Below, in pieces: positions 42,853-53,631 of a DNA stretch of 64,000 bases (the first letter of the stretch is position 1; every line of letters starts with the position of its first letter). Position numbers and translations under genes: made by a program. The notes beneath the pieces were generated by a model. It saw only the letters and a program-made list of their open reading frames with translations. It was not told the origin of the DNA and did no database searches. Location of the stretch: sequence record MK250017.1. The stretch is one strand, 5' to 3'.

Positions 42853-42953
42853 TAGATGTAGGGAGACTTGAACTCCCAAATTCCATACCTAGAATACCAT
42901 GAAATAAACTCAAAATATTATTGAGTTGCGTTTACCCATTTCGCCATACATCT
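42853..42953 (-). tRNA. Class II (Leu/Tyr-like) tRNA-like gene with aberrant anticodon loop
   Basis: Acceptor AGATGTA/TACATCT + A73; D arm GGCGAAATGGGTAAACGC; T arm GGGAG-TTCAAGT-CTCCC; anticodon arm ACTCA-ATAATATTT-TGAGT; ~30-nt variable region. Confidence 0.75.
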
Positions 42954-43165
42954 ATAAAAAGGTAGTTTCTTATCCGAATGCAGTCTAACTACCAAACCTT
43001 GAGTATCACATTTCGTACGTTTCCCAGATATTGTGACATCTGCTTACTATATTACTATAATAAGTTAATCCTTGAATCACTTAAACCTAATTTAATAGGG
43101 ATACATGTCAATCCATGATTAAAAAGTCTTTAGCTTAACAATATTAAAAAATATCGCAAGGATTG

Positions 43166-43237
43166 CAGCCCTAATAAGATTCGAACTTATAACATCACAA
43201 TTAAATATTATGTGCTCTACCATTGAGCTATAGGGCC
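43166..43237 (-). tRNA. tRNA-Lys(TTT)-like gene with A33
   Basis: GGCCCTA/TAGGGCT, GCTC/GAGC D stem, CATAA-TATTTAA-TTGTG, ATAAG-TTCGAAT-CTTAT. Confidence 0.8.
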
Positions 43238-43324
43238 AAGGTCTTATTTTAAATTTCCACGCAATAAGACCTTAGATTTTTGTAGATATGTGTTCATAGT
43301 ACTTAAACTAATGCTTGTAAATAT

Positions 43325-43416
43325 ACTGACGTGTTAACCACTTCACCAATCGCCCATATATATTGTTTTTTGCTTTAATTGAGGGCAATACGGGAATCGA
43401 ACCCGTGTTGGTCAGT
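43325..43416 (-). tRNA. Circularly permuted tRNA-like gene (3' half 43382-43416 precedes 5' half 43325-43355)
   Basis: 3' half ACTGA-CCAAC-ACGGG-TTCGATT-CCCGT-ATTGCCC-T; 26-nt spacer; 5' half GGGCGAT-TG-GTG..CAC-G-TCAGT; acceptor 7/7 and anticodon stem 5/5 complementary. Confidence 0.75.
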
Positions 43417-43560
43417 AAAATTCATGATGTATCACGAATGAACTATGACAATCTAACATTTACTGTAATACTAAAGCTCTTGACTCAATGCTAATGCTAA
43501 AATCTAGGATTTTGTTTATGCTAAATGTAATCAAGCTAATGCTTTAGTCAATTTACATTA

Positions 43561-43589
43561 TTTATATATCAAACAATATACAAAGTCTA
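43561..43589 (-). promoter_or_regulatory. Sigma-70-type promoter TAGACT-N17-TATAAA
   Basis: -35 at 43584-43589, -10 at 43561-43566; upstream of the tRNA-like cluster. Confidence 0.6.
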
Positions 43590-43652
43590 TTTTTATTCTT
43601 AAAATAATTTCACTTAAATAAATATCATAAATGAAATAGTTATCGTAACTAA

Positions 43653-44870
43653 ATGAAAAAGAATAATTATCTATATGAAGAAATGATACAGGATATTTCT
43701 GTTATCGTTAAACATCGAATAAATGAAGCATATGATAATCAACTTCTTGAAGAATATGGTGCAAAAGATATATTTAATGATGTAATGAAAGAAGCTACAA
43801 AAGATGGAAAAATCTTTTATACACATCTTAAAAAATTTATTATTTATGTTATCAAAAAACTTCAAGAAACAAATCAATATAAGCAAGCAGAAAAAATGAT
43901 GAATGCATATGTTCAGAAAATATAGAAATATATAAATGAACATAAAAAGATTACACCTCGTCGTATGTTAAAAATTACAGTTACTGTATTAGCAATATAT
44001 GGCGGTGTATCAATGGTATAGGATTGTAAATCACTAATAAAATCACTACAAAATAATGTAGAAACATATGAGCAAACAGCAGAAGATATTCCAGATTTAC
44101 AATAGGAAAATATTACTGTTGATGAACCAGAAAATTTTGTAGTCAATGTAAAGGATGAAGCAAAATAGACATTAAGTGTTAAACATGTTTCATAGGAAGA
44201 TATTAATAATTCTCCTGCAAATAAATTCGAACATGATAAGAATTTCAATTTTAAATCAAGTAACAGTGCACGTGAATTTATTAAAAAACATGAAATGCTT
44301 CTACTTTATCCTTATTATGCAAATGAAGCTGAAGAAAAACAAGGTAAAGTAACTATAGGTTATGGACATGTTGTATTAGAAACTGATGGTGCATTATATC
44401 AGCAAATACAACAATTAAAAAAGAAAGGTCTTATAAAGCAGTCATTTACTCGTGATAAGAAAACAGGAAAACTTATATTAAATCCTAAACATTGTAAACC
44501 AATTATTACAAAAGTGCAAGCAAATAAATTATTCTTAAAAGATATTAAGATAGCAGAAGATAGAGCATATAAAGCATTGCAAGATATGCCTACTGATGAT
44601 GATAATGTTAAGTGCTATATGTTATATAATCAAAAAATAAGAGATGGATTAACATCACTATGTTATAATGCTGGTAATCTTAAACATGATAAGTATTCAT
44701 TTATAACAAAAGGACTTGCAAAATGTAGATATGATTATAAAAACCAGAAAATTAATCCAGGTGATTATAATGTATCATTCAGTTATTTTAAAAATATTAA
44801 AGATAATCCTAATAGAAGAAATGAAGAATATAAGTTATTCTTTATGAATGCAAATAAATCAATGTCATAA
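43653..44870 (+). CDS. Lysozyme (GH24/T4L-like) with N-terminal propeptide-like segment and TM helix (TAG=Gln, 5 TAG)
   Basis: FIKKHE..VTIGYGH..DGLTSLCYNAG..RRNEE; 405 aa; AATAAATA at 43617. Confidence 0.85.
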
Positions 44871-50230: not shown

Positions 50231-50351
50231 TATTATGCTTTTATTTAGTTTTTATATTTATTATATATAAAAATAGGTAATATGTTTATGAAAAATACAT
50301 ATTACCTATCAAACAAAATTAAACAATTAAATATATATATTATGAAAAATG

Positions 50352-50744
50352 TGGAGACATCCGGAGTCGAACCGGAGTATTACTAACTTGTCAATAATAA
50401 ACTATCTACGTGCGTATTTCTTAATTAGTTTTCATCATACATTCTTAGGAGTTAAACAGTTTAATGTCGTAATCACTCTTATTGGACAAAAAGTATAGTG
50501 AGTTTTATTTAACAGAGAAAACACTCACCGAACTCCGTGGCGATGCTCAACTTACCTTGTAAGGAGCAAATGCTTCAATGGGTTTATATTACCAATCCTA
50601 CCGGATTAAGCTGCCATACGAAAATCAATTTCGTCGTCATTTAAATTTATTTGCTAAATTTCTTTGTATTACTACAAAAGGCTTTTAACTTTCCTACACG
50701 ATTTATTACCACATAATTAATAAGCAAAACCAAAAAATGTCCCC
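50352..50744 (-). ncRNA. ssrA: tmRNA
   Basis: 5' GGGGACA pairs 3' TGTCTCC (G3.U70); T arm CCGG-TTCGACT-CCGG; tag frame DDEIDFRMAA* at 50606-50638. Confidence 0.92.
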
Positions 50745-52614: not shown

Positions 52615-52652
52615 AATTGTAAAAAATTAAAAATATTACTAATGTCATGTCG

Positions 52653-52724
52653 TTGGGGATCCGAGACTCGAACTCGGCCTAAGAGTTTTAGAGACTCCTG
52701 TACTGACCACTATACTAATCCCCA
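52653..52724 (-). tRNA. Amber suppressor tRNA (anticodon CTA), Gln-like
   Basis: TGGGGAT/ATCCCCA (U1-A72, G2-C71, G3-C70); loop CT-CTA-AA; canonical T arm. Confidence 0.92.
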
Positions 52725-53525: not shown

Positions 53526-53557
53526 AATAATTTTTAATATTTAATAACCATATTTTG

Positions 53558-53631
53558 TAGCCCCACTCAGATTCGAACTGAGTCAGCGAAAGTTAGAGTT
53601 TCGAATGCTTAAACCATTACATCATAGGGCA
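53558..53631 (-). tRNA. Second amber suppressor tRNA (anticodon CTA), Gln-like
   Basis: TGCCCTA/TGGGGCT (U1.U72 mismatch); CGAAA-CTCTAAC-TTTCG; CTCAG-TTCGAAT-CTGAG. Confidence 0.92.

Follow-up and report, generated by a model that had tools for sequence, protein, structure and literature searches.

The 64,000-nucleotide (nt) stretch of sequence record MK250017.1 analysed here, called the window below, is the part of a TAG-recoded megaphage genome that encodes translation RNAs (PMC6784885). On its minus strand, at 43238-43551, lies a 314-nt element in which the two halves of a transfer RNA (tRNA) are encoded in swapped order, the 3' half first. The element represents a previously undescribed family of phage tRNA mimic, which works like the known permuted tRNA-like RNAs and is a member of none of them. 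The explanation that accounts best for it, and one that we consider reasonably probable, is a non-coding RNA that imitates tRNA, is processed by tRNA enzymes, probably into two pieces, and heads a phage tRNA operon. The parts of this explanation differ in strength. There is little doubt that the family is structured and transcribed. Cutting of the RNA at the first nucleotide of the tRNA-like domain (G1) is somewhat probable, a two-piece mature form is an even call, and a role as scaffold or mimic is put forward tentatively.

The 471 bases around the element are 100% identical to the records of Prevotella phage Lak-A1/A2, 99.4% identical to Lak-C1 and about 81% identical to nine Lak-B genomes, and all of these matching records are unannotated. 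The window itself is Lak-A1 sequence, and coordinates below are those of the window unless another record is named. More distant relatives were gathered by pattern scans of IMG/VR and metagenome contigs, and the family stands at 86 parsed copies, 45 of them unique, in Lak-type megaphages and in gut phages of 135-190 kilobases (kb). Phages of human and animal guts widely carry the RNA, whose length ranges from 299 to 418 nt and whose linker between the halves ranges from 17 to 163 nt. Seven matches to the leader signature were found among 185,579 prokaryote species, each represented by one genome; all seven are chance matches without a tRNA-like core, and the family therefore looks phage-restricted. 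Members without the 5' domain were also sought: the 66 loci that share the D-arm word yielded only dimeric-tRNA false positives, and the 14-mer matches yielded none. Neither ARAGORN nor the Rfam tRNA model makes a call on the native permuted gene, and tRNA finders systematically miss permuted genes of this kind. Rfam 15 has no description of the family, and the locus matches none of its known RNA families. The Lak paper (PMC6784885) contains no occurrence of the terms tmRNA (transfer-messenger RNA), tRNA-like, permuted or SmpB, and no paper describing the permuted RNA was found in the searchable literature.

The first-pass annotation of the window had described, on the minus strand, a complete 3' half, a 26-nt AT spacer and a complete 5' half, and every element lies where it had been placed. 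In the direction of transcription, the 3' half comprises the 3' strand of an anticodon-like stem (ACUGA, 43412-43416), a variable loop (CCAAC, 43407-43411), whose C48 pairs with G15 and whose final base is C in every variant listed, a T arm (ACGGG/UUCGAUU/CCCGU, 43390-43406), the 3' strand of the acceptor stem (AUUGCCC, A66 to C72, 43383-43389) and the discriminator U73 (43382), which is U in 44 of the 45 unique members. The linker that follows (43356-43381) is A/U-rich and not conserved among the Lak clades; our reading is that it combines a 3' trailer and a 5' leader of the tRNA-like domain. The 5' half begins with the acceptor stem's 5' strand (GGGCGAU, 43349-43355), whose G1 at 43355 is the predicted RNase P site. 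It continues from U8 to G26 (43330-43348) with G9 and a canonical D arm containing G18 and G19, a segment that is nearly invariant in the family and retains its D stem of 3 base pairs (bp) in 18/18 sequences, and it ends with the anticodon-like stem's 5' strand (UCAGU, 43325-43329).

Complementarity between the halves over the acceptor and anticodon stems, also claimed at first reading, is confirmed at the locus and has been kept by compensatory changes. Between Lak-A and Lak-B the acceptor stem changes across the halves from GGGCGAU/AUUGCCC to GGGGAUU/AAUCCCC and the T stem from ACGGG/CCCGU to CAUGG/CCAUG; a contig of bovine-gut RNA has a further compensatory change in the T stem (G51-C63 to A-U). 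In the leader/trailer helix an A-U pair of Lak-A is G-C in Lak-B, and in the relatives L153, L167 and L009 both outer leader/trailer helices are wholly replaced with complementarity kept. The compensatory changes that the first-pass annotation had proposed to look for in relatives are thus found both between the halves and in the flanks of the 45 unique members. Over these members the acceptor stem is paired at 7/7 positions in 44/45, with 11 sequence combinations. The T stem is paired at 5/5 positions in all 45, with nine combinations, and the anticodon-like stem at 5/5 positions in 42/45, with 10 combinations and a length of exactly 5 bp in nearly all.

Several tests of the fold agree with these changes. 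Given eight lineages and no prompting, RNAalifold returned the permuted cloverleaf; both partners differ in 14 of its 21 pairs, and every pair of the acceptor and T stems is intact. In a covariance-model alignment of 18 lineages, 16 of the 21 pairs are changed on both sides. Standard pairs make up 99.2% of the pair cells over 18 lineages, against 74.9% after shuffling (0/500 shuffles as high), and a control with slid register gave 32-46% paired cells. Once un-permuted and given a placeholder loop, the core is accepted as a tRNA by ARAGORN in 22/22 lineages. At the locus a covariance model built for the permuted core reaches 94.5 bits, and it finds no second copy in the 64-kb window, which bears out the earlier claim that no other partner halves lie nearby. 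Conservation is inverted with respect to a normal tRNA gene: the tRNA-like stems drift freely, and the D arm, the T loop, the 5' domain and the boxes described below are nearly invariant from the 540-kb Lak phages to the unrelated phages of 135-190 kb.

The tRNA-like domain is set in a larger structure. Single-sequence folds of 10 lineages have the same overall plan, namely, a 5' hairpin, a long interrupted leader-trailer helix, which carries a small variable hairpin, a junction strand and, at its end, the tRNA-like domain, and a 3' hairpin. In 44/45 single-sequence folds at least 15 leader-trailer pairs form beyond the anticodon-like stem. The outer helices join the leader strand TAGAT (43451-43455) to the trailer strand AUCUA (43283-43287), and the leader strand TCATAGT (43442-43448) to the trailer strand ACUAUGA (43294-43300), with a GAAC-containing loop lying between the two trailer strands (43283-43300). 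The TCATAGT/ACTATGA pairing and the recurrence of AGCATTAG-type boxes had both been noticed at first reading, and both are present. On the leader side, the small hairpin 5' of the anticodon-like stem (43420-43439) differs in sequence and length by the lineage folded. On the trailer side, a junction strand of 20-odd nt carries in a large junction loop the trailer box AAGCAUUAGUUUAA (43303-43316), which reads Ala-Leu-Val-stop and is conserved as AGCNUNAGCNUNA. The 3' terminal hairpin (43238-43273) abuts the 5' end of the next tRNA. It has a conserved loop and a covarying stem, GGUCUUAUU/AAUAAGACC in Lak-A and AGUUCUAUU/AAUAGAACU in Lak-B.

The 5' domain (43470-43551) is an irregular hairpin of about 80 nt. 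Its sequence is almost identical from Lak to phages of about 180 kb, and it folds in the same way in the 10 lineages: CUAAAGC (43541-43547) pairs with GCUUUAG (43471-43477), and the repeated boxes within the domain largely pair with one another. The domain contains GAGUCAAGAGC (43476-43486), and AGCAUUAG-type boxes are present in it as well. Its apical UCCUAGA (43503-43509) is invariant in 45/45 unique members. Because the hairpin is nearly invariant across very different phages, a conserved partner is indicated, and the hairpin is likely to be the effector part of the RNA. The apical loop includes the palindrome CUAG, and a 12-nt palindrome is found at the 5' end in 33/45 members; judged by their sequence, these elements could support self-association.

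Wherever the downstream flank was examined, the element occupies the same position relative to tRNA genes. It stands immediately upstream of arrays of 15-24 tRNAs in L009, in L167 and in the complete 185-kb genome G004, where it directly precedes 24 tRNAs; in Lak it precedes tRNA-Lys(UUU) (43165-43237, minus strand, called by both ARAGORN and Rfam) and then an atypical class-II tRNA. The protein gene upstream is not conserved, being a divergent open reading frame (ORF) in Lak, which starts at 43653 on the plus strand, and a DUF7873 gene in L167. Between this ORF and the RNA lies a putative promoter region that includes the 5' boundary of the RNA (43552-43600), in which Lak-A, Lak-B and Lak-C share the conserved blocks TAGACTTTG (43581-43589) and ATATATAA (43562-43569). 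A promoter of the permuted RNA operon is plausible here. The first-pass annotation had placed one directly upstream, and the edge of the RNA contigs and the divergent gene fit that placement, short of proving it.

Contigs assembled from four RNA runs cover 43100-43543, reaching 43535-43543, and no RNA-run contig covers 43562-43700. The upstream edge of the RNA is placed at the start of the conserved sequence because contig coverage stops there. RNA-run contigs join the element to tRNA-Lys(UUU), and one gut metatranscriptome has only 43167-43350, that is, the 5' half, the trailer and tRNA-Lys. The version of the phages of about 180 kb reaches a word share of 0.86-1.00 in RNA-type libraries from many studies, some of them of 46-82 megabases, and a 60-nt contig of its 5' domain has a depth of 6700 in complementary DNA (cDNA) from wastewater.

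The ends of the tRNA-like domain have the features of tRNA genes. U is found at position -1 in 44/45 unique members, G1-C72 in 45/45, and C74 without C75 in 45/45; in the genuine tRNAs of these phages N73-C74 is found in 80/82 and U-1 in 59/82. Since these end features match those of the phages' own tRNA genes, the sequence argues for tRNA-type maturation. The long linkers form a covarying hairpin of their own, which leaves single strands beside both acceptor ends, like the leader and trailer of a pre-tRNA; no ribozyme and no Rfam match was found in them. In L013, L065, L071, L075 and related phages of about 180 kb, the linker is a conserved hairpin module of 113-163 nt, the stems of which covary (GGUGGGA/UCCCACC against GGUGAGA/UCUCACC). 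This module could be a released RNA in its own right.

Two independent RNA-run contigs have junctions exactly at G1 (43355), so that the 5' end of an RNA at G1 is in part borne out. In a 534-nt contig from wastewater cDNA the junction is 43389|43355, a skip of 33 nt (43356-43388) that takes out the linker, U73 and acceptor positions 67-72 and nothing else, so that G1 follows A66. This contig may reflect a DNA deletion variant, reverse transcriptase that jumped on reaching an RNA 5' end, or a 3' piece that was trimmed and then ligated. The other junction, in a bovine-gut metatranscriptome, is a back-join, 43206|43355, at a depth of 2. In it, G1 of the element is linked to nucleotide 32 of tRNA-Lys(UUU), which lies immediately 5' of the anticodon. 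The break in the tRNA is at the place where anticodon nucleases such as PrrC cut tRNA-Lys. The back-join could be an artefact, or it could have arisen from a cleaved phage tRNA-Lys by ligation or template switching.

In the mechanism that we propose, a promoter of its own would drive transcription of the permuted RNA, the gene of which stands first in a tRNA operon. Host RNase P would be recruited by the permuted tRNA fold and would cut 5' of G1 (43355). The 3' side would be trimmed after U73-C74 and completed to CCA by host enzymes, and the RNase P cut of the next tRNA would probably set the 3' end of the RNA behind its terminal hairpin. With the linker lost, two RNAs would remain, held together by about 25-30 base pairs in the acceptor and anticodon-like stems and the two outer helices. 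The same logic is documented for permuted, two-piece tmRNA (PMC11915505) and for the YrlA RNA of Mycobacterium smegmatis (PMC4201824). A two-piece product of RNase P cutting and 3' trimming had been suggested at first reading, and that route fits the evidence (7-bp acceptor stem, U-1, C74, single-stranded flanks and the junctions at G1). In place of an anticodon loop the product would have a long leader-trailer helix leading to the 5' hairpin and the 3' terminal hairpin. Such an RNA would not decode; it would act as a tRNA-shaped scaffold or mimic, with the invariant 5' hairpin and the single-stranded boxes contacting a conserved partner.

A number of points weigh against this explanation. The RNA evidence consists of assembled contigs of public runs and so gives no ends, strand or abundance, and two of the runs (X9 and X10) are one data set filed twice, so that the four runs amount to three independent ones. 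The run with the 33-nt skip (X1) is flagged as probably DNA, and the skip could be a deletion variant; the back-join has low depth. Contigs also read through the linker uncut, one of them with the further T-stem change noted above, and RNA runs show the full word share, linker included. Some molecules are therefore uncut, and by analogy with the Salmonella YrlA RNA the mature form could stay in one piece. As to structure, alignment A3 was fitted to the model and leans towards the structure, a bias of which alignment A2 and the single-sequence folds are free, and covariation cannot test the pairing of the 5' domain because its sequence is too invariant. Finally, no partner of the permuted RNA was identified.

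The alternative that survives best, though we hold it to be unlikely, is that the element is only a cis-acting leader of the tRNA operon, without a function in trans. In its variants the leader would recruit or organise RNase P, protect the 5' end of the precursor, or make the polymerase resistant to termination across the tRNA array. The location of the element suits such a role: it leads the array in Lak, L009, L167 and G004, it has a putative promoter region of its own, the RNA contigs run on into tRNA-Lys, and the nearly invariant 5' hairpin is at the very start of the transcript. Processive-antitermination RNAs such as the put RNA of HK022 sit at the transcript start as well. However, a tether to the polymerase would soon be lost to RNase P cutting at G1 and at each tRNA. 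A leader would also need less than a complete tRNA fold that includes a Levitt pair, a conserved elbow and C74, and the full-length presence of the RNA in very small RNA libraries suggests that it is stable and abundant.

The next alternative, a divergent YrlA-type Y RNA, appears rather improbable. Here the tRNA-like module would be the effector side, and the leader/trailer or the 5' hairpin would bind host Ro60/Rsr, by which the phage would exploit or block RNA decay by Rsr-PNPase. The topology is identical, with a T arm, a capped acceptor stem-loop, a D arm and paired ends, and in YrlA-type Y RNAs too the open end is at the position of the anticodon stem and there is no decoding (PMC4201824; bioRxiv 10.1101/312249). 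YrlA occurs in phages, and in M. smegmatis RNase P cuts it and CCA is added (PMC4201824). Since a TROVE protein is present in Bacteroides thetaiotaomicron, the Bacteroidales hosts may have Rsr. The carriers themselves give a different picture. In whole-genome tests, made here and below on Lak-B1, Lak-C1 and IMG/VR records, no TROVE gene (PF05731) was found in the seven carrier records searched, five of which are complete or at least 90% complete. The Ro-binding motif GNCGAAN0-1G occurs in 0/45 members, anywhere in the RNA, and no Y-RNA family matches at E up to 10. The conserved 5' domain has no counterpart in YrlA, which is about 3-4 times shorter than the permuted phage RNA, and the phage RNA heads tRNA arrays, unlike YrlA, instead of lying in an rsr/rtcB locus. 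The first-pass annotation had known of no precedent in a phage. This has to be corrected, since the Y RNAs of the YrlA type reported from phages share the topology; the permuted RNA nonetheless fails the tests for both YrlA and tmRNA.

A two-piece tmRNA-like molecule is improbable to a greater degree. Such a molecule would be aminoacylated, would enter stalled ribosomes and would add an Ala-Leu-Ala/Val tag encoded by the trailer box. In gene order and in the logic of its maturation the element agrees with permuted tmRNA, in which a permuted tRNA-like domain undergoes processing of the RNase P/CCA type (PMC11915505). As in the two-piece tmRNAs of Alpha- and Betaproteobacteria and Cyanobacteria, a 3' piece with acceptor and T arm is followed by an intervening segment and a 5' acceptor piece, and a long interrupted helix leaves the tRNA-like domain. 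Maturation by tRNA enzymes to two paired RNAs, which we infer for the phage RNA, would be a further likeness, and two-piece tmRNA is likewise phage-borne alongside other translation RNAs. In addition, the trailer box reads GCN-UUA-GYN-UAA/UGA after an A-rich spacer, with TAA and TGA alternating, Lak encodes SmpB, and tags of two amino acids and tag-less forms are on record (PMC11915505).

Against a tmRNA-like function stands, first, the tRNA-like domain itself. G3:U70 is found in 0/45 members, pair 3:70 being C-G in 34, G-C in 10 and U-C in one. The D arm is canonical, and the place where SmpB should sit is taken by a true anticodon stem of 5 bp. The tmRNA models RF04321 (tmRNA_permuted) and RF01850 score 13.4 bits against a threshold of 47 and 12.7 bits against a threshold of 84, respectively, each over the T arm and acceptor only, and ARAGORN makes no tmRNA call at the locus. 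The trailer box is no better as a reading frame: it has variants with a 1-nt insertion, a 6-nt deletion or a lost stop, its last residue is variable, and where this box reappears in the 5' domain its 'stop' position can be any base. SmpB, encoded elsewhere in the genomes of Lak-B1, Lak-C1 and G005, was found only in Lak among the carriers and is absent from the carriers of about 180 kb G003 (93% complete) and G004 (100% complete), although host SmpB could still serve them. Lak and G004 moreover carry a separate, ordinary tmRNA. Compared with two-piece tmRNA, then, the phage RNA has no pseudoknot ring and no credible tag frame and is SmpB-independent.

A related possibility, to which we give little credence, is that the permuted RNA works on the ribosome or with an aminoacyl-transferase, its 5' hairpin and Ala-Leu-Ala-stop-like boxes being an mRNA-like or docking part. 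If true, it would be a phage-specific counterpart of trans-translation that is independent of SmpB and alanine, or a non-ribosomal aminoacyl donor. The tmRNA relic of mycobacteriophage DS6A, which has only the tRNA-like domain and is a proposed decoy, is likewise a phage RNA that is mainly a tRNA-like domain (PMC4131195). The DS6A domain, however, is of tmRNA type and in standard order, whereas the RNA described here is of tRNA type, permuted, and provided with large extra domains.

It is very improbable that the element is a true permuted tRNA gene, the leader and trailer of which are removed and the ends ligated through a circular intermediate, as in Cyanidioschyzon merolae. Permuted tRNA genes are known in this alga, in other algae and in an archaeon. 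Those of the C. merolae type resemble the phage gene in having a complete cloverleaf once the halves are reordered, the 3' half upstream of the 5' half and leader/trailer pairing. The algal and archaeal ones mature by a bulge-helix-bulge cut, circularisation and ligation, whereas in the phage RNA no such motif was found by inspection, and there is no conserved anticodon loop and no evident isotype. Bacteria are not known to have the splicing endonuclease. A conserved 7-nt anticodon loop cannot be rebuilt: the 5-bp stem is preceded by a variable hairpin and followed by an A-rich spacer, with about 7-19 nt before the trailer box. With respect to isotype, the similarity to any co-resident tRNA is at best 0.14-0.26, with no isotype standing out, and among the identity positions U73 and G1-C72 are conserved and pairs 2:71 and 3:70 vary.

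The case for ligation is that an RNA ligase of the Rnl2 family is encoded in 5/5 carrier genomes tested and that one contig, of low depth, is back-joined. Rnl2-family ligases are common in large phages, and the back-join is at G1, not in an anticodon loop. The RtcB profile has no match in the carrier genomes examined; T4 Rnl1 gave no match either, but its control was also silent, so that this blank is uninformative. The first-pass annotation had offered ligation to a mature tRNA as an alternative outcome. For a decoding tRNA this is not supported: the flanks of the 5-bp stem vary, and the leader and trailer are more conserved than the tRNA stems.

The last alternative, a functionless remnant of two tandem tRNA genes or a misassembly, is already refuted: ordinary tandem tRNAs can mimic the arrangement, with model scores of 25-43 bits, and 67 for two near-identical His tRNAs in L173, but members score 65-96 bits (85-96 if the linker is short), the covariation spans both halves and the flanks, 86 copies, assembled independently from very different phages, have the halves in this order, and the contigs of RNA libraries match the genome order.

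The permuted tRNA mimic has a wider bearing. Permuted tRNA folds matured by tRNA enzymes are known in two non-coding classes, two-piece tmRNA and YrlA, and the phage RNA would be a third, independent one. It offers a concrete way into the question of how large phages engage the translation apparatus other than by supplying tRNAs. It also adds to the unexplained large phage RNAs beside tRNA islands, GOLLD and ROOL, which are likewise phage-encoded, structured, of unknown function and located beside tRNAs or contain them, and which can be highly abundant (PMC12286853). The permuted RNA is smaller than GOLLD and ROOL (300-420 nt), its permuted tRNA fold is not theirs, and their Rfam models have no match at the gathering threshold over the window or at E up to 10 over the locus.

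A link of the element to TAG recoding was considered, prompted by the UAG-rich boxes, the TAG recoding of Lak and a suppressor tRNA with anticodon CTA beside the element in L009. It was ruled out by G004, a complete carrier genome that fits the standard code and has no suppressor tRNA. Within the window, ORFs that flank the element depend on TAG as a sense codon; the divergent ORF upstream of it (43653-44870, plus strand), for instance, needs this at five in-frame positions. Two tRNAs with the anticodon CTA, at 52652-52724 and 53557-53631 on the minus strand, are labelled 'Pyl' by ARAGORN and are the amber suppressors expected for the TAG reassignment of Lak.

Other observations concern the neighbouring translation RNAs and individual copies of the element. 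An ordinary one-piece tmRNA at 50349-50744 (minus strand; 54 bits with Rfam, no ARAGORN call) has G3:U70 and a tag ending in Arg-Met-Ala-Ala-stop. In G004, which has no SmpB, a 548-nt match to the tmRNA model (102913-103460, 80.5 bits) lies 4 kb upstream of the element and is long enough that it may contain an insertion or intron. In L241 (470-530) and L242 (3047-3107), different 12-nt deletions between repeated AGC boxes of the 5' domain are accompanied by a 10-nt loss of one strand of a trailer helix; these look like slippage variants and are possibly defective copies. The class-II-like tRNA downstream of tRNA-Lys in the window (101 nt, 42853-42953, minus strand) combines a long variable arm with an anticodon loop that, at 8-9 nt, is oversized. 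It scores 43.3 bits in a local Rfam search and was missed by ARAGORN and by the window-wide search at the gathering threshold. Its Lak-B counterpart is within about 10 nt of tRNA-Lys, and Lak-A has about 210 nt of extra non-coding sequence between the two. In several phages of about 180 kb (L104, around 1795-1870, and the equivalent positions of L058 and L194) the tRNA that comes first after the element seems to carry an anticodon loop of 9 nt, such as ACTTTCATT flanked by CAAGA and TCTTG, and in L167 the first tRNA is called 'Asn' with anticodon ATT by ARAGORN.

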